Assembly: GCA_001179505.1 (NCBI GenBank)
Contig: CDMY01000204.1
Span: forward strand, 62,001 to 126,000
Reading direction: 5' to 3'
Length of the DNA: 64,000 bases
DNA from: Vitrella brassicaformis CCMP3155
Lineage: Eukaryota > Protista > Chromerida
The notes below the pieces were generated by a model, which did not search any database, was not told the origin of the DNA, and saw only the letters and a program-made list of their open reading frames with translations. Position numbers and translations under genes: made by a program. Positions 47,487-58,874 of this stretch are shown piece after piece (position 1 is the stretch's first letter; the number at the start of each line of letters is the position of its first letter).

Positions 47487-47855
47487 ATATCGTCCCTCGT
47501 GTGGTTAGACCATCCGATGTGATTCGAGAGCAATTGGATGAACGAACGTCCGGTGAAGGTCCGTCGTGGAGCTATTTGTCGTGGAGTGCCGCTCCTGTAG
47601 TCAGGTCAACCGGCGGGCGGTGTGGCATTCGGCAAGAGGGAACTCCTGAACACAAGCAATGTACGTACGTATGCATGGCAGCCACCCGTCATTGTTCTTT
47701 GCTTACCATCACCGACTGGGGGAGGCCGCTCACAACCGTGTCCTTTTTGGTTGACTTACCCTAACTCCGACCGTTATGTTTGTATACGTATTTTGGGCGT
47801 GGAGGAGGACGGCCTCGCGGACTTTTGCCAGAAGGGCGCACGGACTCTTGCCGTC

Positions 47856-50567
47856 ATGTTCACTTTGCTCTGTATCATCTTGGTCATTTTCTGGGCCACT
47901 CCCCATTGTGATGCGCAGGGCTTCGACACCACGCTCTCTCCGTCCTGGGCCACGTCAGAACAGGAAACGCCCCTTCGAGTGAGGCTGTTTGTCGATCCTG
48001 AGAACAAGCTCAAGTATGAGGTGTATTCTGGGCCTCACAAGATTGTGGCCCCGTCGGCTCTCGGGCTCATTCTGGATCACTACGGCCAAGAGGTCCACCT
48101 CGGTGACAATGTGCAAGTGGAGGTATTATCGCCGCCCAGGGAAGCCTCTCAGACATATTCCACCATGGGAGGTCATGCCACTGCAAACAGCCAATACGGT
48201 GAGCTCTATTCGTCTGGACAAAGTCTGGACTTCACCTGTGTGTGTCTTCTTTGGTTCTGTTTTCAGTGGAAGCATCATACAGCGTTCGTCACGTTCCCAC
48301 TGGTTTGACGTACTCTGTTGACTTTCGCGTATCAGCAGCAGGTTCTCCTGGCGTGGCATTTCTTTACGCTTTTCGCGATGACGCCACTGTAGACAAAATT
48401 CGAATCAAGGACGACGGCTCTGAATTCGTCATGGAATTCGGCGACACGGACAATGCATGGATTGTGGAGAGGCGTGACGGCCTCTTTTCCTACATCGGCC
48501 AGTACATGAGTGTACCGGCAGCTTCGCTGTGGTCTCGGAGCTCACAGGGCGGCACAATAGACCGTTACAACACACCCGTGACGATTGAGGATTCTAGCAG
48601 GAGCAGCCCATTCCCCTATATTGTGATCAATGAGGCTAGTCTCTTCGGTTTTGAGGGCTTTCATCTGGTGGCGTTGCCTGGAGGCGTCGGTTTCAAAAGC
48701 GAGCTCGCGAGGGGGCTAGAGTATGCACGTCAGGAGCAGAACTTATGGGGGCCGCTGGAGTTGGAGCTTCCCGTGAAGACGTCTTGGCGAGTGATTCAAC
48801 TGGCTGCAAATCTGGACCAGCTGGCCAATCACAGTAATAATTATGACAGCCTCACCTCAGCCTGTCACAAGTGCGTCAATTTGGATAATTACCTTAGACC
48901 TCGTCAGTGACCTGAATCCTTCGCCGGATGAGCGCAACCCGGGACTCTTCACTGAGACATCCTACATCAAACCAGGCAGGTCGGCTCGCCACAGCGGGCG
49001 CGGAATGTGTCGATTTCCTCTGTGATTGTAGGTCGGTGTGGACGTGCCTCGCGTCTCCTACCTGTGGCCACCCTCTACTCTATGAGCAGGTGGACAGAAA
49101 TAGACATCACGCTCTTTTGCTTAGTGAGTGGGTGCTGTGCCGCACCTTCTGGATTGCGCAGGAATGGGATCAAGTGACGGGAGCGGCAGCGCTAGCCCTG
49201 GAGTACTCGACGGTCGATATCGGTAGGGATGGGGGGACGCTGGAACGGATTCGGTGGCCGTGTGCAGTTCCAATGCGGTTTGTCAGGTTGGGAGGACTGG
49301 CCTGGCCCCTGGGAGAGTGTTAAGAAGCTCACAGCATATGGAGATTCGAAGGGAGTGGGCATCTTTCTGTGGAAGCACCGTGAACAAGTGGACGATCCTG
49401 CCGACAATTACAAAGCCCTTCGTGACTTCCTTGATTTGGTTAAAGACGCTGGTGCTGTGGGTAAGACTGAGATAGACGAATACTCTTTCTTCACGGTCTT
49501 CGTCCTGTGCAGGAGTTAAGTTTGATTTCTTTGACGCGGCCAGCTTCAACACCATTTTGCTGCAAGAGACCATCCTACGTGAAGCTGCCAAAAGAAAGCT
49601 CCTCCTCAACTTTCATGGGATACAGGTGTTTGAGCGAGTCAGTTCAACTGTGGCCGCATTAACCTCTTTGCCCTGTGTTTCTGCTGTGTGTTGCAGAAGG
49701 CTACCGGAGAGTCACGTACGTACCCAAACCTTATAACGCAGGAGGCGATATGGGGCCTGGAGGTGGGCACAGTCGATTGCTGGCATGCAGAGCACACACG
49801 TTTTTTTTCGCACGCCTTCTGTTCAGATCAACCACAACCCAGCAATCTTGGACAAGGTAAAATGAGCATCATGTGTTTGAGCGCACAAGATGTTGCTGAG
49901 AAGATGCTCGACAGGCATAGAAACTCACTTTGTTCTGTCTTTCCATTCTGCTCGGCAAGATTCCGCCCTCCCACAACGCTGCTCTTACCTTCACAAGGTA
50001 TCATTCCCCTATCTGTATCTTTCCCTGGTCCCCGTCATTGCGTACAGGTTTCCAACGGGCGCTGCGGACTATACGCCACTGTCATTGGGTCACATAAGAC
50101 AAGGGACAACTCAGGTGCACCAGGTGGCCCTCCTCGTGACATTTAACTCGCCAATACAGACTTTTGCGGAGGCGCCCCGAGTGATTCTCGAGCAGAAGTT
50201 TACTGACATCATTACCGACATTCCCACGACATGGGATGTCACGAGGGTCCTCCCTCCCTCAAAAATAGGAGACATGACTGTGCTGGCGAGGAAGAAGGGC
50301 GACGATTGGTGGCTTGGCGTGGTCAGCGGTACAGTCGACACACGGGTTGTCTCGTCCATTCCACTCGATTTTCTCGATCCGTCCAAGACCTACTTGGCCT
50401 CGCGTCTGTACACATTGCACTTGAGCAGCGACGGCAAAGATGAGCAAGTCGGTGTCGAGAGGGACCGGAGGATGGGTCCGAGCGAGAGGACACTGACGGA
50501 CATTTTGCTGTGGGGCGAGGGCCACAAAGGAGATGGGCTGGTCGTCAGCTTCCGTCTCGAGCAATAA
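47856..50567 (+). CDS. Secreted glycoside hydrolase family 97, retaining subtype (alpha-galactosidase/glucosidase-like), intron-containing
   Basis: Signal MFTLLCIILVIFWATPHCDA; motifs TSWRVI, SYIKPG, GVGIFLW, GVKFDFF, LNFHGIQKATGESRTYPN, QEAIWGLE, ADYTP, HQVAL, IPTTWDVTRVL and IGDMTVLARKKGDDWWLG. Confidence 0.93.
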
Positions 50568-50833: not shown

Positions 50834-51609
50834 GGCTGTCGGTGTCTGTCGCTGGGTGACACAGTGTGTGTTGCTCGTGCCTGAAGTTCTTGTGTTTGGT
50901 TTGATGCCGATGATTCGGCGGGTCACGGTGAATTCTCTCTGATACGTCGCTTGTCTGAGTGTGTGGATGCCCTCGTTGAGAACTCATACGCTGAGAAGAC
51001 GGTGGTTAAGCTTTATGCTCACCTGAGTCATTCGACGCGCTTGAGGGATGATGTCTCACTTCGTTAACGCTGGAATTTCTCGTTCATTCAATGAGAGCTG
51101 CGTGGTGGCTGGGGAGTCATACACATGCTTGTCTGAGTCCATTGTACACAATGAAAGGCCTGGAAAGTTTCACGCCTGACGTTTATTCATTCAATCTCGA
51201 GTCCTCGCGCTTGACTCATTGATACGCATTCCATCCCGGGCCTTTGATCGACAAGAGGCAATCCATGGTTGGAAGTCAGGGGTTGTGGATGGTGCTCTCC
51301 ATATGGTGCTCTCCATATGCATATGTTGGATAGCCAACTGCAAGACTCAGTGGGTTCTGCCCTCCGCAGTTGACTCAACCACTGGCTAGTCGGTGCTCGG
51401 CTCGGCCCTTCGGGCCTCGCCTTCGCACCACCGCCGATTTTGTGTCCTTCAATTCGTTTCGGCATGCGAGTCATCGGTTTATTCACCCTAGAGCTCTTGC
51501 CTGGCAATTCAGAAGGAATGTCTGCTCTAACGCGTACCATCCCCAACGGTCGTCGCCTCCGAGAGGTGGACCGTGCGTCCCTTTCCGTTGCGTGCTCCGC
51601 CAAAGCGAT

Positions 51610-52589
51610 ATGCGTGCCCTCATTTCGCTCGTCGCTCTTTTCCTCGTATGTGCCACGTGTGCGGATGCAGCTCCACTCAGCAGCTTCACTGTGTACAGCA
51701 GGGAATGGGCCGAAAACACTTGCTCTCTCTCTCCCGACCCATATATAGGGGTTGCCGACGTTGCCACTGGAGAAAAGCAAGAGAATAGAGGGACAATCGG
51801 TTGCAGTGCTGCGCAAAGCATCCGCAGTGTCTATACCACCGGCATCTTTGCGACGGATTGGGAGAGCCTATCTGACGAGCAATTTAAGACCAACATGAAG
51901 GTGAGAGAGTGAAGAACAAAGACGTGAGACACTCCTGTGTCCTGCCCACCTCGCTGCCTGCTGCAGGATGTGACTCGTGAGTTCAAGGAAGACGCATACT
52001 CCAAGGTGAGCTGCTTCGCTTCGTCATGAAGCTGTCTACGGACGTCATGGTGCTCCTCTTGTTGTTTAGTTCGCCACACTGCGTCTTAAAGAATTTCAGT
52101 GGAACCGAATGGGTTCCACTGAAGACAAGAAGGACCGAATGCACATCGGTAAGTTGACGCATGGGTCGAGCAAAAGGAAACCTGTCCTTGCCCGTGGGTG
52201 CCGTGCGGTGCGCGCAGGTGTCTCTGCCCAAGACATCATGAGAGTGCTTCCAGGCAAGGGGACGAGCGGACACGCACTCTTCTTGCGGACGCGTGATGAG
52301 TCTGTGTCTGTGCATTCTCCCAGATGCGGTCAATGTGTATATGGAGCCCACGGGAGGGGGCGCAAACTCGAACATGACCGAGGTCCATTACATCGACATG
52401 AACTATATGAACTATCTTCAGATGTCCGTAGTCCAGCAACTGCAGAAGCGTACTGAGGTGGTCCAGCAGCTGGAGGAACGTGTCGAGGCACTCGAGAATC
52501 AGCTGGCCGACATCCAGGCGGAACAGGAGAACGGCTTCATGACCATGCTCGAGCAGGCCCTCAAGGACTTTAGAGGCGGCCGCGACTGA
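51610..52589 (+). CDS. Small secreted protein with a C-terminal intramolecular chaperone auto-processing (ICA/peptidase S74) domain, copy A
   Basis: Exons 51610-51900, 51967-52005, 52070-52148, 52218-52253 and 52324-52589 splice to signal peptide + passenger + SDEQFKTNMKDV...LRLKEFQW...IGVSAQDIMRVLPDAV...YIDMNYMNYLQMSVVQQL...LEERVEALENQL. Confidence 0.85.
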
Positions 52590-55500
52590 GGACTGGCCTT
52601 GCTGACTTGGCTGGCTCATACATATGAAAGGTGTGCATCGTGCTCTACGCTGTTTGTTGTTGGAGTGTGTGTGTGCGTGACTCTTTTTCGTCTGCTTCCG
52701 TCCTATTCGTTTTTGCAAATGCAACGGAAGGCGACCGCCCTGCTCCCGTGTGCAGAGCGGGCGTGCATTACACGCAAAACACCCTTGTGTGAACGTGTGT
52801 ATGCGCGTCCCATCTGCACTGTCTATCGGTGTTTATGTGTTGCACTTGCTCTCTGGTTGTGTATCTGCATGTGTGTCCGCATGGATGTGATCGTTCATCT
52901 CGCTCGGTAGCCAGTGGTGCTTGCAGGCAATGACCTTGCGAGCTGCACATCTGGAATTGCTTGCACACACACATCTCCCTCAAGAGAGTTCATGTGGTGG
53001 CTGAGTACATGTGCATGTTTCTGTCTGCACAAAGGTCATTTGCCCTTTTACGTCTCACCCCATCTGTCCTCTTGTCACTCGCAGGTAAGTGGCTGTCACG
53101 TGATGCGTGCTCGCGTGTGCATGTCGATAGATGAGCATACAGGTGATTTGTCCTTCTGAACTTGGCGCCTGGTGTGTATGGGTGTCTGTGTGACCTGCCG
53201 TCTCGGGCGGGTACACAAGAGCGGGCACATCACGTGCGCAGACACCACCCCCAAGTCATTTTCACTCCCACACGCCCTTTTGTAATTCGGTGTAATTCTT
53301 TGGACAACAAATGTGGACGAATTTTCATTTTGATTTAGACATTGATTCTGTCGGTGCCTCTCCTGACGGGCCAGCTAAATCCTTCCCAGAACTTTTCTGT
53401 CGCCGCGCAGCCTAAACCATCACCGCCTGGCAAACGCTTCTCAACACATGTGCAGTCCGGCTGGACCAGGGGCACATCGAGCGTGGCCGTGGGTTGGCTG
53501 AACATTGTTGCTGCTTCGATACTGTAATGACGGACGTCCTCTGACCGGTAGTGAGCATACGTATGTCTCGGCAATTTACCACAACGGTCGTCGAGAAATC
53601 TCACACAGCGTGCACTTCCGTTGTGGCACGTACAGTACGGCTCACTGTACCTTTGCAACAGCATTCCTCGTTCACCCGTCCGTCCTTCCCGCCCTTTTCT
53701 CTGCAGCTGCCGTCACGATGCGTGCCCTCATTGTGCTCGTCGCCCTTGCCATCGTGTGCGTCACGCGTGCGGGCGCGGCTGAACTCAGCAGCTTCACCTT
53801 GTTCGACCGAGAGTGGTCTGAGCAGAGTTGCTCTACCTTGCCCCTCGAATCACCCTATCTCGCGGTTGCCGACGTCAACACTGGAGAAGTTCAACCGGAT
53901 GAGGGTGGGCGAGCTCAGAAGGATAGGCAGGCTATCCCTGGGCACGTGAGTCTCATCTTGTGTGTGCGCGTCAGGCTCCATCGGATGTGGCTTTGAGTTC
54001 CGCATTGGCAGCGTGTACGCGACCAACATCTTCAGGACAAACGAGCAGAGCATCTCTGACGAGCAATTCAAGACTGACCTGCAGGTGAGGGGTCGGTCAT
54101 GTCTCATGACGTCCACAAGAAAACACGACACTTCCTGTCTGTCTGGCTGCCTACCTGCTTGCCTGCAGGATATGAGCCCTGAGTTCAGTGAAGAAGTATA
54201 CGACAAGGTGAGTTACTGCACATGAAGGCGTGTTCGACGACACACATTTGGTGTCCGACGTGTCCAGTTCGCCGATCTGCATCTCAAGTTTTTCCCCTGG
54301 GACTCAGAGAAGATCAAGATGCGCTCCGGGGCCGAGGAGGACCACTGGGAGATAGGTGAGTCGGAAAGGAAGGAATGCTCGGCACGTATGTCAAGCAGAG
54401 ACTAAGACGCACTCCCTCTGCCCGTTTGTCTCCAGGAGTAGTAGCCCAAGAGGTTCAGAAGGTGTTTCCAGGTACTCTTGCACACTCTTGCCGACGTGTG
54501 ATGGTCTTCTGTCTCTAATTCTTCCTGTCCTAGATGCCGTGCGCACATACGAGGAGGCCATTAGGGATGGCGCAAACTCCACCACGACCGAGGTCCATTA
54601 CGTCAACATGGACTACATGAGCTACCTGCAGATGACCGTAGTCCAGCAGCTGCAGAAGCGAGTCGAGTCGTTGGAGAAACAGCTGGCCGACATCCAGGCG
54701 GAACAGGAGAACGGCTTCATGACCGTGCTCGAGCAGGCCCTCAAGGACTTTAGAGGCGGCCGCGACTGAGGACTGGCCTTGCTGACTTGGCTGGCTCATA
54801 CATATGAAAGGTGTGCATCGTGCTCTACGCTGTTTGTCGGAGTGTGTGTGTGTGTGTGTGCGTGACTCTTTTTCGTCTGCTTCCGTCCTATTCGTTTTTG
54901 CAAATGCAACGGAAGGCGACCGCCCTGCTCCCGTGTGCAGAGCGGGCGTGCATTACACGCAAAACACCCTTGTGTGAACGTGTGTATGCGCGTCCCATTT
55001 GCACTGTCTATCGGTGTTTATGTGTTGCACTTGCTCTCTGGTGCGATTTGTGTATCTGCATGTGTGTCCGCATGGATGTGATCGTTCATCTCGCTCGGTA
55101 GCCAGTGGTGCTTGCAGGCAATGACCTCGCGAGCTGCACATCTGGAATTGCTTGCACACACACATCTCCCTCAAGAGAGTTCATGTGGTGGCTGAGTACA
55201 TGTACATGTTTCTGTCTGCACAAAGGTCATTTGCCCTTTTACGTCTCACCCCATCTGTCCTCATGTCACTCGCAGGTAAGTGGCTGTCACGTGATGCGTG
55301 CTCGCGTGTGCATGTCGATAGATGAGCATACAGGTGATTTGTCCTTCTGAACTTGGCGCCTGGTGTGTACGGGTGTCTGTGTGACCTGCCGTCTCGGGCG
55401 GGTACACAAGAGCGGGCACATCACGTGCACAGACACCACGCCCAAGTCATTTTCACTCCCACACGCCCTTTTGTAATTCGGTGTAATTCTTTGGACAACA

Positions 55501-55733
55501 GATGTGGACGAATTTTGATTTTGATTTAGACATGGATTCTGCTAAATCCTTCCCAAAACTTTTCTGTCGCCGCGCAGCCTGAACCTCATCACCGGCTGGC
55601 AAACGCTTCTCAACACCACGTGCAGTCCGGCTGGACCAGGGGCACATCAAGCGTGGCCGTGGGTTGGCTGAACATTGTTGCTGCTTCGATACTGTAATGA
55701 CGGACGTCCTCGACCGGTAGTGAGCATACGTAT
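52500..55733 (+). repeat. ~1.06-kb direct repeat (52500-53564 and 54680-55733): 3' end of the ICA CDS plus downstream DNA
   Basis: The offset is about 2180 bp and identity is above 90% by eye. Confidence 0.93.
53718..54769 (+). CDS. Small secreted protein with an ICA/peptidase S74 domain, copy B
   Basis: Exons 53718-53904, 53975-54084, 54169-54207, 54269-54355, 54436-54471 and 54534-54769 give SDEQFKTDLQD...LHLKFFPW...IGVVAQEVQKVFPDAV...YVNMDYMSYLQMTVVQQLQKRVESLEKQL. Confidence 0.88.
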
Positions 55734-56450: not shown

Positions 56451-56750
56451 NNNNNNNNNNNNNNNNNNNNNNNNNNNNNNNNNNNNNNNNNNNNNNNNNN
56501 NNNNNNNNNNNNNNNNNNNNNNNNNNNNNNNNNNNNNNNNNNNNNNNNNNNNNNNNNNNNNNNNNNNNNNNNNNNNNNNNNNNNNNNNNNNNNNNNNNNN
56601 NNNNNNNNNNNNNNNNNNNNNNNNNNNNNNNNNNNNNNNNNNNNNNNNNNNNNNNNNNNNNNNNNNNNNNNNNNNNNNNNNNNNNNNNNNNNNNNNNNNN
56701 NNNNNNNNNNNNNNNNNNNNNNNNNNNNNNNNNNNNNNNNNNNNNNNNNN
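56451..56750. other. Assembly gap (300 N)
   Basis: Run of N. Confidence 1.
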
Positions 56751-57858: not shown

Positions 57859-58874
57859 TCACGTGCAGGCGGGGGAGGTGACGACGCTCGAGTAGGCCAT
57901 GACGGAGTCGTCATCGGCCAGCGCCACCACCTGGAAAAACAGGCACTGCGAGCGGCCCGCATCGACAGCCACCCAGTGCTCAAACCGCGTCCTCGTCACC
58001 GTTTCAAGATACTCGCCGACATTGTCGGCGACCAACCCCTGCATGACCCGCCACTTGGCCACATTGGTGGCGCCGTTCCAGCTGAAGTGCAGCTGCAACA
58101 GGCCATCCGTGTTGTCGTCGTCGAGCAGTGCGACGGGCTGCCACGTGGGCCGGCCCGTCCAGGGGGCCTTGACGCTCCGATAGCTGTGATAGGGGCCATC
58201 CCACCTCAGACTCACCAACCAGCTTCCGGATGGGCTCGTCTGATCCACACAGGCGTGCAAAGGAGACGGAGGAATCACGACACAGATGCAATAGACGGCA
58301 ATGGATGCAATGCAACTCGTCTCTATTGTCTATGAACGGACATACCTCCGCATAGAATGGGTTGCCGACGACGTTTTCCTCCTGCATTGATGTGAAGACG
58401 CGTGTGCATCGTCGTTGTCTTTTCGTGACAGCGGGTCTGACCTGTATTTGCTGGTCGTTGGGATTGAACTCGTCTGGGACGTCGAAGCCCAAGCACACGG
58501 CTCTGTTGCCGTTGTCGAGGCGGCGGTAGCTGCCCTTGGCGTAGGCGCGCATGCCGCTGTCCCACATGCTCTCGACGCGGGCGACCGTCGGCGTGCCGTC
58601 GCCATCGAATTCCAGCGCGTAGTCCATTGCCCTCGCGTGGGTGTCTCCTGTGCGGACGGCATTGTCGAAGAGCGTGATGATGTCGCCGCCGAGGTCGCGC
58701 GCGTCGTGCTGGGCGGCGAACTGACCATTCGGGTCGCCAACTATCTCGAACGAGCTACGCTTTCCGCCGAGACGCCACAAGACTGCACCAGTGGTCCTGG
58801 ATGAAGAGGAGAGAGAACCATGTGGTAGCAACGGCGCAAGAGGGAGGAAGCAACGACCATTCGTACCTGTCGAT
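57859..58874 (-). CDS. Arylsulfotransferase (ASST, fungal/actinobacterial type), C-terminal part; the 5' part is lost in the gap
   Basis: IDR|TTGAVLWRLGGKRSSF...FAAQHDAR...ITLFDNA...AKGSYRRLDNGNRAVCLG...HSYRSVKAPWTGRP...LHFSWNGATNVAKWRV. Confidence 0.85.

Follow-up and report, generated by a model that had tools for sequence, protein, structure and literature searches.

Small, probably secreted proteins with a tail-fibre-type S74 chaperone domain form a five-gene family in Vitrella brassicaformis

The genome of Vitrella brassicaformis CCMP3155 encodes a family of small proteins in which a short N-terminal passenger is followed by a Peptidase_S74 intramolecular chaperone (ICA) domain. Two of its members, g1 and g2, are tandem paralogues with several introns each, and lie on the (+) strand of the window, the stretch of 64,000 nucleotides that was analysed; all coordinates below refer to this window and strand. 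This domain (MEROPS S74, Pfam PF13884) has been characterised thoroughly in MYRF and in the tail fibres of phages. In the interpretation adopted here, with modest confidence, the members of the mini-family are small secretory-pathway proteins built from a signal peptide, a passenger, an ICA domain and a trimeric coiled coil, in which a self-inflicted cut would free the passenger as a trimer.

Both loci are genuine nuclear genes of Vitrella and are expressed. Gene g1 (51610–52589) has five exons (51610–51900, 51967–52005, 52070–52148, 52218–52253 and 52324–52589) and encodes 236 aa, while g2 (53718–54769) has six (53718–53904, 53975–54084, 54169–54207, 54268–54355, 54436–54471 and 54534–54769) and encodes 231 aa. 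Both are manual models of the kind proposed in an earlier note on this DNA, and their four (g1) and five (g2) joints are matched exactly by spliced contigs from the public runs X1, X2 and X7. Support from these three runs, which represent at least two studies, thus extends to 9 of 9 introns, including one of the GC-AG type, g1 intron 4 (52254–52323), whose joint (52249>52320, with four ambiguous letters) is present in contigs of all three. The homologous intron of g2 (54472–54533) is GT-AG, and another g2 intron (53905–53974) splits the passenger region. X3, a run of the DNA type, matches the genome collinearly across both genes and contains none of the spliced joints. The evidence of expression consists of assembled contigs only, and the RNA type of X1 and X2 is a guess whose sole support is the spliced form itself.

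Public annotation covers the pair unevenly. The g2 model is identical, letter for letter, to CEL94073.1 (UniRef A0A0G4EFD7), whereas the public g1 model, CEL94072.1, comprises only residues 96–236 of the manual one (141 aa); lacking exon 1, it has no signal peptide, no passenger and no catalytic dyad. The public model of the paralogue on contig C318 (P0003) likewise begins at an internal Met. UniRef names both the g1 and the g2 product “Peptidase S74 domain-containing protein”, so the description of the domain as hidden was overstated, and this label, together with the further S74 genes of the Vitrella genome, limits the surprise of the finding. In the literature searched, no study was found of these proteins, or of a cellular lumenal or secreted use of S74/ICA with a cargo of ~70 residues.

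Several kinds of search bear out that the C-terminal two thirds of each protein constitute a genuine Peptidase_S74/ICA domain together with a coiled coil, the domain having been named in the earlier note. Against PF13884, for which the curated gathering cut-off is 22 bits, the comparison gives 47.7 bits for g2 (E 1.9e-12; model positions 1–58 of 58, the whole model) and 38.4 bits for the 141-aa public fragment of g1 (E 1.5e-9; model positions 8–57). The matching part is cut by four introns in each gene, spanning residues 88–151 in g1 (51871–52331) and 90–157 in g2 (54055–54544). In g1 it is followed by the distal ICA strands, the long helix or coiled coil, a conserved C-terminal tail and the stop codon (52332–52589), and the profile alignment to the MyRF ICA crystal structure 7DC3 extends through the helix. 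The motifs L.LK.F.W, IGV(S/V)AQ(D/E)...(L/F)PDAV and HY(I/V)(D/N)M.YM.YL are present in both proteins, as is the long C-terminal helix. The domain becomes visible only after splicing, which agrees with its reported absence from the ORF track: Pfam searches of single exons returned no S74 and coiled-coil noise only, and a six-frame family search retrieved g2 exon 5 alone (E 1.1).

Comparisons beyond Pfam point the same way. A profile of the family matched 7DC3 among PDB entries over 100 residues, including the helix (E 0.0032); only this family profile reached 7DC3, as phmmer with the member P0004 alone found no match among PDB sequences. In the ESM Atlas, 10 of 10 Pfam-bearing feature neighbours and 9 of 10 structure rows carry PF13884. 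A tblastn search with the ICA part retrieved 42 phage records (best E 8e-5), and the annotated ones among the matches listed are mostly tail-fibre genes; identity to the C-termini of Escherichia phage tail fibres is 33% over 118 aa.

The usual S74 motif is SDxRxK, with Arg at +3. In g1 the putative cleavage and catalytic motif is S88-D-E-Q-F-K93 (51871–51888; Ser codon 51871–51873, Lys codon 51886–51888) and in g2 it is S90-D-E-Q-F-K95 (54055–54072), the two Ser codons lying where they had been placed before. Residue 90 of g2 falls on the first position of PF13884, and positions 1–6 of the model align with the motif in both g2 and P0004, with Ser88/Lys93 of g1 and Ser90/Lys95 of g2 at positions 1 and 6. 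The F and W of LKEFQW align with Y615 and Y617 of MyRF in the profile alignment. Gln does replace the usual Arg, as had been remarked, and the doubt this cast on activity is softened by mutants of MyRF, in which S587A and K592A abolish cleavage whereas R590A still cleaves in part (PMC8326128); the substitution is therefore not disqualifying. Cleavage by the g1 and g2 dyads may be proposed from the presence of these residues.

Both proteins begin with a predicted signal peptide of 20 residues, consistent with the earlier proposal. That of g1 (51610–51669; residues 1–20) ends in ADA before an A and that of g2 (53718–53777; residues 1–20) in AGA before an A. The only hydrophobic segment of each protein is N-terminal, and the residues at −3/−1 are small; in g1, hydrophobicity reaches 2.19 in this segment (KD19) vs a maximum of 0.76 past residue 30. 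These features indicate that the proteins probably enter the secretory pathway. The passenger of g1 (51670–51870; residues 21–87) has 67 aa, a mass of 7.2 kDa, a pI of 4.3 and two cysteines, Cys38 and Cys65; it consists of a head with a REWxExxC motif and a neck of the form GxIGC...I..VY...IF. That of g2 (53778–54054; residues 21–89) has 7.6 kDa and Cys38 and Cys67, so the reported pair of cysteines holds for both genes and the reported length of ~67 aa for g1, the g2 passenger being 69 aa long. No Pfam family was found in the passenger part of g2 or of P0004. Searched alone against the ESM Atlas, the passenger reached a best score of 0.83, under the level that counts, and its nearest clusters, S74-bearing small proteins and tail fibres, serve as no more than a lead.

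Plastid targeting was considered as a candidate and rejected: downstream of the signal peptide the chain is acidic and its conservation is that of a passenger, which would be unlike a transit peptide.

The five members of the mini-family all have intact frames and share the positions of their introns (4–5 per gene). Their passengers are acidic and 67–81 aa long. Of two invariant Cys, the first lies in a head of ~40 aa and the second in a neck of ~27 aa (GxIGC...I..VY...IF); none of the five departs from the head motifs or lacks either Cys. Four of the five retain Ser and Lys(+5), and these four are otherwise only 44–62% identical. In the exception, the C318 member, Q-D-S-R-G-T stands at the dyad, so that Ser and Lys are lost while the neck, the ICA domain and the C-terminal tail are kept; cleavage is therefore not indispensable to the mini-family. 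The tail past the coiled coil is conserved across loci, which suggests that this C-terminal part may have a function of its own.

Both genes are under purifying selection, passenger included: between g1 and g2, dN/dS is about 0.34 for the passenger, and the ICA part gives the same value. A near-identical tract (95–99%; 52458–53541 vs 54638–55711) covers the last ~130 nt of coding sequence, the 3′ UTR and intergenic DNA, and across the final 46 codons dS falls to 0.14, from about 1.1 upstream, marking the tract as the product of gene conversion or of a recent partial duplication. There is no third tandem copy beyond 55711, where the repeat stops; an assembly gap (56451–56750) comes next. Relatives outside the genome were sought in several ways. 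An exhaustive search with g1 exon 5 gave four matches, all from Vitrella or identical fragments, with no outside homologue; word-based queries, for which P0004, the g2 product (P0005) and the family alignment were used, recovered nothing but the family itself; a look-up of contigs encoding P0005 yielded no record; and a metagenome scan gave no relative. The mini-family may thus provisionally be regarded as confined to Vitrella, such searches being weak for a passenger of 70 aa.

Vitrella also holds many larger S74 paralogues, for example at loci on contigs C185, C332, C429, C55 and C436, and a large S74-capped repeat fibre gene lies on the same contig as g1 and g2 (C204), 16 kb past the window. 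The neck motif (I/L)GC...SDxRxK is common to the mini-family and to larger paralogues (L003, L004, L005 and L007), while identity between their ICA domains is only 22–33%. At least one other S74 locus of the assembly, L001, is AT-rich and intron-free. Beyond Vitrella, S74 is ubiquitous in fibre genes of the polinton-like viruses of protists (PMC12220804). The notion that MYRF represents the sole use of S74 in a eukaryotic setting was accordingly too strong, given these viral fibres and the larger Vitrella paralogues.

The g1 and g2 genes themselves are host genes, not viral ones. In place of the makeup of a viral tail fibre or tailspike, they have a 67–69-aa passenger that belongs to no family, 4–5 spliceosomal introns, a GC content of 53–55% like that of the remainder of the window, and cellular genes (GH97 and arylsulfotransferase-like) on their flanks.

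Structure prediction was applied to g2 as a monomer and as a homotrimer. The AF2 monomer, made from a five-row alignment, is poor (pLDDT 51.6) and places a helix at residues 179–228. With this model, VIA-align ranked 7DC3 at the top (Z 5.4; rmsd 4.7 over 121 residues) and 3GW6, the ICA domain of phage K1F endosialidase (endoNF), second (Z 3.6; rmsd 5.6 over 120 residues), with unrelated rows at Z 2.5 or less, and the top three Foldseek hits were chains of 7DC3 (E 0.1). Because the monomer model is poor, these fold searches are only supportive and weak in absolute terms. The alignments to both structures begin 19–23 residues upstream of the Ser.

The homotrimer prediction has strong controls. 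The trimer model has an ipSAE of 0.87 vs 0.01 for the best control; the pass mark was attained by 21 of 30 homo-pairs of solved structure and by none of 23 single chains, although a pass may reflect the predictor's memory of solved ICA trimers. The pLDDT is 80 and the runs share at least 88% of contacts. Its interface comprises residues 176–211, in the coiled-coil region, and residues 57–89 of all three copies. In the neck, the list of contacts contains the inter-chain pairs 73–78, 75–80 and 77–82. The offset thus stays at +5 in these ~30 residues ahead of the Ser, a pattern that would fit an intertwined beta stalk.

In the proposed course of events, the ICA domain and coiled coil would gather three chains in the ER lumen, the necks would wind together into a short beta stalk, and the Ser/Lys dyad (S88/K93 in g1, S90/K95 in g2) would cut the L87–S88 or I89–S90 bond. 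A trimer of roughly 3 x 7.5 kDa, possibly disulfide-locked, would thereby be freed from an ICA trimer of 3 x 17 kDa, and might play a structural or binding role outside the cell or at its surface; adhesin, cyst-wall or toxin-like use of a stable trimer, as the earlier note suggested, would be candidate roles. Several observations count against release by cleavage: a head of 40 aa makes a very small cargo to depend on a chaperone for its folding, and the loss of the dyad in the C318 member, the Gln at +3 and the conserved tail weigh in the same direction. A bolder version, possible but doubtful, is that a viral cassette of neck and ICA domain was turned into a secretory device for tiny, covalently or kinetically locked peptide trimers (~3 x 7.5 kDa), which would act at the cell surface or in the wall, or would cap and nucleate larger S74 fibres. 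Such a device would handle the smallest known natural cargo for an intramolecular chaperone, as a minimal triple-beta stalk with a 40-residue binding tip.

Some of the observations that count against cleavage would suit a permanent trimeric scaffold, in which the cut is slow or does not occur and the working unit is the complete 3 x 24 kDa assembly, a short stalk that displays a small Cys-containing head. The C318 member, with its altered dyad but intact neck, ICA domain and tail, would be explained, as would the conservation of the tail between loci and the Gln at the usual Arg position. This arrangement is nevertheless rather unlikely, in that Ser and Lys(+5) are kept in four of five members despite 44–62% identity elsewhere, the two aromatic residues close to the scissile bond are retained, and the Arg is non-essential in MyRF (PMC8326128). 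Less probable still is that the ICA and coiled-coil part is the functional product, or acts as a cap or regulator that co-assembles with the ICA domains of larger S74 fibres, the passenger being a vestige of a lost fibre. The shared neck motif (L003, L004, L005 and L007), the S74-capped fibre gene 16 kb past the window and an ICA part twice the length of the passenger could be read in this way; however, purifying selection on the passenger equals that on the ICA part (dN/dS 0.34), all five members share its head motifs and its two Cys, and with an ICA identity of only 22–33% the large paralogues would be poor partners in mixed trimers.

A decaying fibre remnant of a polinton-like or giant virus, or an annotation or assembly artefact, either of them devoid of cellular function, is hardly credible. 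In its favour, the polinton-like viruses that are integrated in genomes of protists carry S74 fibre genes ubiquitously (PMC12220804), and locus L001 is AT-rich and intron-free. This reading is largely refuted by the spliced contigs in three runs, the dN/dS of 0.34 and the intact frames of five paralogues, and it also conflicts with host-like GC, with 4–5 spliceosomal introns at conserved positions and with the predicted signal peptides. If the favoured self-cutting of secretory-pathway proteins does occur, the family would offer a minimal natural system for chaperone-assisted trimer folding, and would exemplify the domestication of a virus-type fibre module in an alga that has apicomplexan parasites among its relatives.

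Among known systems, phage endoNF and tail fibres share with the Vitrella proteins a match to the whole PF13884 model, a Ser/Lys(+5) pair at its start, a beta part succeeded by a long helix, predicted to trimerise in Vitrella, and, by prediction, beta strands immediately upstream of the Ser. They differ in cargo, which amounts to hundreds to thousands of residues in phage but ~70 aa in Vitrella, where no virion-attachment, receptor-binding or enzymatic domain is found. The Vitrella genes are, moreover, intron-bearing, cellular and eukaryotic, and their products have a predicted signal peptide, Gln at +3 and an extra conserved tail.

MYRF and Dictyostelium MrfA resemble the mini-family in their use of the ICA domain by a eukaryotic cell, and MYRF (7DC3) leads the PDB matches both in the profile search (E 0.0032) and in the structural one (Z 5.4, with the pLDDT 51.6 model), an aromatic pair being kept at its Y615/Y617 positions. 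The contrast with membrane-tethered MYRF that was drawn before is upheld: PF13884 is the sole Pfam family above cut-off, the spliced product gave no match to MYRF_ICA (PF13887), which had been suggested as a second profile, and the Vitrella proteins have no NDT80/PhoG DNA-binding domain, no second hydrophobic segment and hence no transmembrane segment after the ICA domain. Their topology would be lumenal or extracellular rather than cytosolic, and they would release a tiny peptide trimer rather than a transcription factor.

The fibres of polinton-like and giant viruses of protists likewise place an S74 cap in a eukaryotic setting and are a plausible ultimate source of the domain; they are large modular virion fibres of up to 3.9 k aa encoded in viral elements (PMC12220804), whereas the Vitrella products are 231–236-aa proteins of host genes with host GC, introns and predicted signal peptides. 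Closest to home are the larger S74 paralogues of the same genome, which have introns and the same cassette of neck and ICA domain, (I/L)GC ... SDxRxK. Those proteins carry long N-terminal parts, while the mini-family has a head of ~40 aa and an exon structure of its own.

Two tandem paralogous genes, g1 and g2, lie on the same strand within 51610-54769, in a eukaryotic stretch (the window, whose GC content is 53–58%, spans C204:62001-126000) of an assembly of 72.7 Mb and 1064 contigs. As spliced by hand on the + strand, g1 has five exons (51610-51900, 51967-52005, 52070-52148, 52218-52253, 52324-52589) encoding 236 aa, and g2 has six (53718-53904, 53975-54084, 54169-54207, 54268-54355, 54436-54471, 54534-54769) encoding 231 aa. 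Logan contigs from four public sequencing runs were aligned to 51500-54900. Runs X1, X2 and X7, representing at least two studies, contain the four joints of g1 and the five of g2, each exactly where it was modelled; the RNA nature of these runs is the tool's guess, and the evidence is the spliced form itself. Contigs of the fourth run, X3, are collinear with the genome over this interval and represent DNA. The manual splicing of both genes in the earlier note is therefore borne out, as are its Ser codons at 51871 (Ser88, g1) and 54055 (Ser90, g2) and the full set of sequence motifs it listed. The g1 intron at 52254-52323 is of the GC-AG type, confirmed in spliced contigs, and the homologous g2 intron is GT-AG.

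The g2 model matches a public protein letter for letter (CEL94073.1). In contrast, the public version of g1 (CEL94072.1, 141 aa) corresponds to the model from Met96 onward. Exon 1 is left out, despite being joined to exon 2 in the spliced contigs, and with it go the predicted signal peptide, the passenger (the part between signal peptide and Ser) and the Ser/Lys motif. Spliced contigs begin at ~51565-51581 for g1 and ~53643-53656 for g2, with no ATG in them upstream of either modelled start. Since these 5′ ends precede g1 exon 1 and no earlier ATG occurs, the exon belongs to the transcript.

Membership of g1 and g2 in the S74/ICA (intramolecular chaperone) family, as first claimed, is established at the level of sequence. 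Against Pfam PF13884 (cut-off 22 bits), g2 scored 47.7 bits (E 1.9e-12; all 58 model positions covered by residues 90-157), the g1 fragment 38.4 bits (positions 8-57) and the paralogue P0004 46.6 bits. The family profile matches the MyRF ICA crystal structure 7DC3 (E 0.0032) over ~100 residues, extending into the C-terminal helix. A tblastn search with the ICA part of g2 recovered 42 phage records (the best at E 8e-5, with 33% of 118 aa identical), and the annotated ones among the matches listed were mostly tail-fibre genes. In the ESM Atlas, PF13884 was carried by all ten of the nearest Pfam-bearing feature clusters and by nine of ten structure rows, with MYRF-like ones among them. Structural support, from a poor AF2 monomer of g2 (pLDDT 51.6), is weak but specific. 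Chains of 7DC3 were the top three Foldseek matches (E 0.1), and VIA-align placed 7DC3 (Z 5.4, rmsd 4.7 over 121 residues) and endoNF 3GW6 (Z 3.6, rmsd 5.6 over 120 residues) ahead of every unrelated row (≤2.5), with both alignments beginning 19–23 residues upstream of the Ser.

Both genes encode the putative catalytic dyad, Ser plus Lys at +5. At +3, g1 and g2 have Gln, most relatives Arg, and Vitrella paralogues R, K or S. In MyRF, cleavage is abolished by S587A and K592A, while R590A merely lowers its fidelity (PMC8326128); Gln at +3 is therefore no argument against activity. In the profile alignment, MyRF Y615/Y617, an aromatic pair near the scissile bond, align with F/W of LKEFQW (g1) and LKFFPW (g2).

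Modelling three copies of g2 residues 21-231 predicted the homotrimer that the earlier note had proposed, with an ipSAE of 0.87 versus 0.01 for the best control, a partner pLDDT of 80 and at least 88% contact agreement between runs. Of proteins with solved structures, 21 of 30 homo-pairs and none of 23 single chains reach the mark applied; the tool warns that the pass may merely reproduce trimers already solved for the family. The predicted interface takes in the coiled coil at 176-211 together with almost the whole of 57-101. Three inter-chain pairs, 73-78, 75-80 and 77-82, rank among the contacts of highest confidence, and their constant +5 offset is as expected of parallel strands in an intertwined beta stalk. 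These contacts lend support, short of demonstration, to the suggestion that the residues before the Ser form a last beta-helix turn.

The only hydrophobic stretch in either protein is N-terminal, a predicted signal peptide ending ADA|A (g1) or AGA|A (g2). The passenger is small (67 or 69 aa, 7.2–7.6 kDa) and acidic (pI 4.1–4.3), has two Cys and matched no family in a Pfam search. Because dN/dS between g1 and g2 is ~0.34, alike in the passenger and the ICA part, the passenger is not junk.

Five mini-genes at four loci emerged from a six-frame genome search with P0004, extended by local tblastn and manual gene models. Besides g1 and g2 on C204, these are P0004 on contig C520 (215 aa, SDEKYK at the dyad), a gene on the minus strand at G000:C905:1838-4975 and P0003 (CEM02114.1) at G000:C318:61800-64910. 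The C905 gene, returned by none of the protein searches, was modelled by hand (211 aa, SDERSK; exons 2394-2598, 2267-2315, 2098-2173, 1991-2029 and three more down to 1489), with one uncertain splice site, the GTGCAC donor that follows exon 2. P0003 truly begins at an in-frame ATG further upstream, which adds a predicted signal peptide absent from the public model; an assembly gap (N-run) lies within one of its introns. The five share 39–62% identity, intron positions, a predicted signal peptide, an (R/H)(E/Q)WxExxC head motif, a GxIGC...I..(V/I)(Y/F) neck and the ICA domain. In larger Vitrella S74 genes, too, an (I/L)GC ... SDxRxK neck motif precedes the Ser, so neck and ICA domain look like one inherited cassette, on which the mini-family places a very short head.

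At least eight further loci in the Vitrella genome exceed the PF13884 cut-off. The genome's best match (52.8 bits) falls within G000:C484:52316-55474, on the minus strand, in an open frame of 378 aa with N/S/T-rich repeats upstream of an SDISLK ICA domain. The stretch around it is intron-free and has 34% GC, compared with 55% for the host, and may represent a viral insertion (polinton-like or giant virus) or foreign DNA in the assembly.

The g1 and g2 proteins are 58% identical. Over their 5′ two thirds the genes share only ~74% identity, with a dS of ~1.1, whereas a ~1.1-kb tract covering the CDS end, 3′ UTR and intergenic DNA (52458-53541 versus 54638-55711) is 95–99% identical, with a dS of 0.14. 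This contrast points to a conversion tract or recent partial duplication superimposed on an old duplication. The two copies also carry (TG)n runs of unequal length in their 3′ UTRs (52654-52664 versus about 54843). No third copy was seen in the sequence following the pair; a further one may hide in the assembly gap just after it (56451-56750), which holds 300 N. Upstream lies a GH97-family glycoside hydrolase (47622-50567, +; GH97_N, Glyco_hydro_97, GH97_C), and downstream, on the other strand, an arylsulfotransferase-like (PF14269) exon (58004-58831, -). Both are carbohydrate/sulfate enzymes of kinds commoner in bacteria.

On balance, we lean slightly towards a predicted self-cutting system. 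The protein would enter the secretory pathway, three chains would join via the ICA domain and coiled coil, and a self-cut at L87|S88 (g1) or I89|S90 (g2) would set free a tiny acidic trimer with two Cys per passenger. The main rival, a permanent scaffold that forms without cleavage, draws on conservation of the tail beyond the coiled coil and on P0003, a natural paralogue whose dyad is lost (Q-D-S-R-G-T) while neck, ICA domain and C-terminal tail are kept; it is judged rather unlikely. Less likely again is that the ICA part is itself functional, or that mixed trimers form with the big Vitrella fibres. The introns, expression, selection and composition of the genes all but exclude a dead viral remnant.

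An exhaustive phmmer search of 1.84 billion representatives with the last exon of g1 gave four matches, all Vitrella brassicaformis CCMP3155 proteins by exact look-up. UniRef names each a "Peptidase S74 domain-containing protein", so the domain had already been labelled automatically; no mention of it in Vitrella was found in the literature searched. Domain and label are thus already known, and what appears undescribed is a cellular lumenal or secreted context with a cargo of ~70 residues. The ubiquity of S74 caps among polinton-like viruses of protists (PMC12220804) makes viral fibre genes a plausible source of the cassette.
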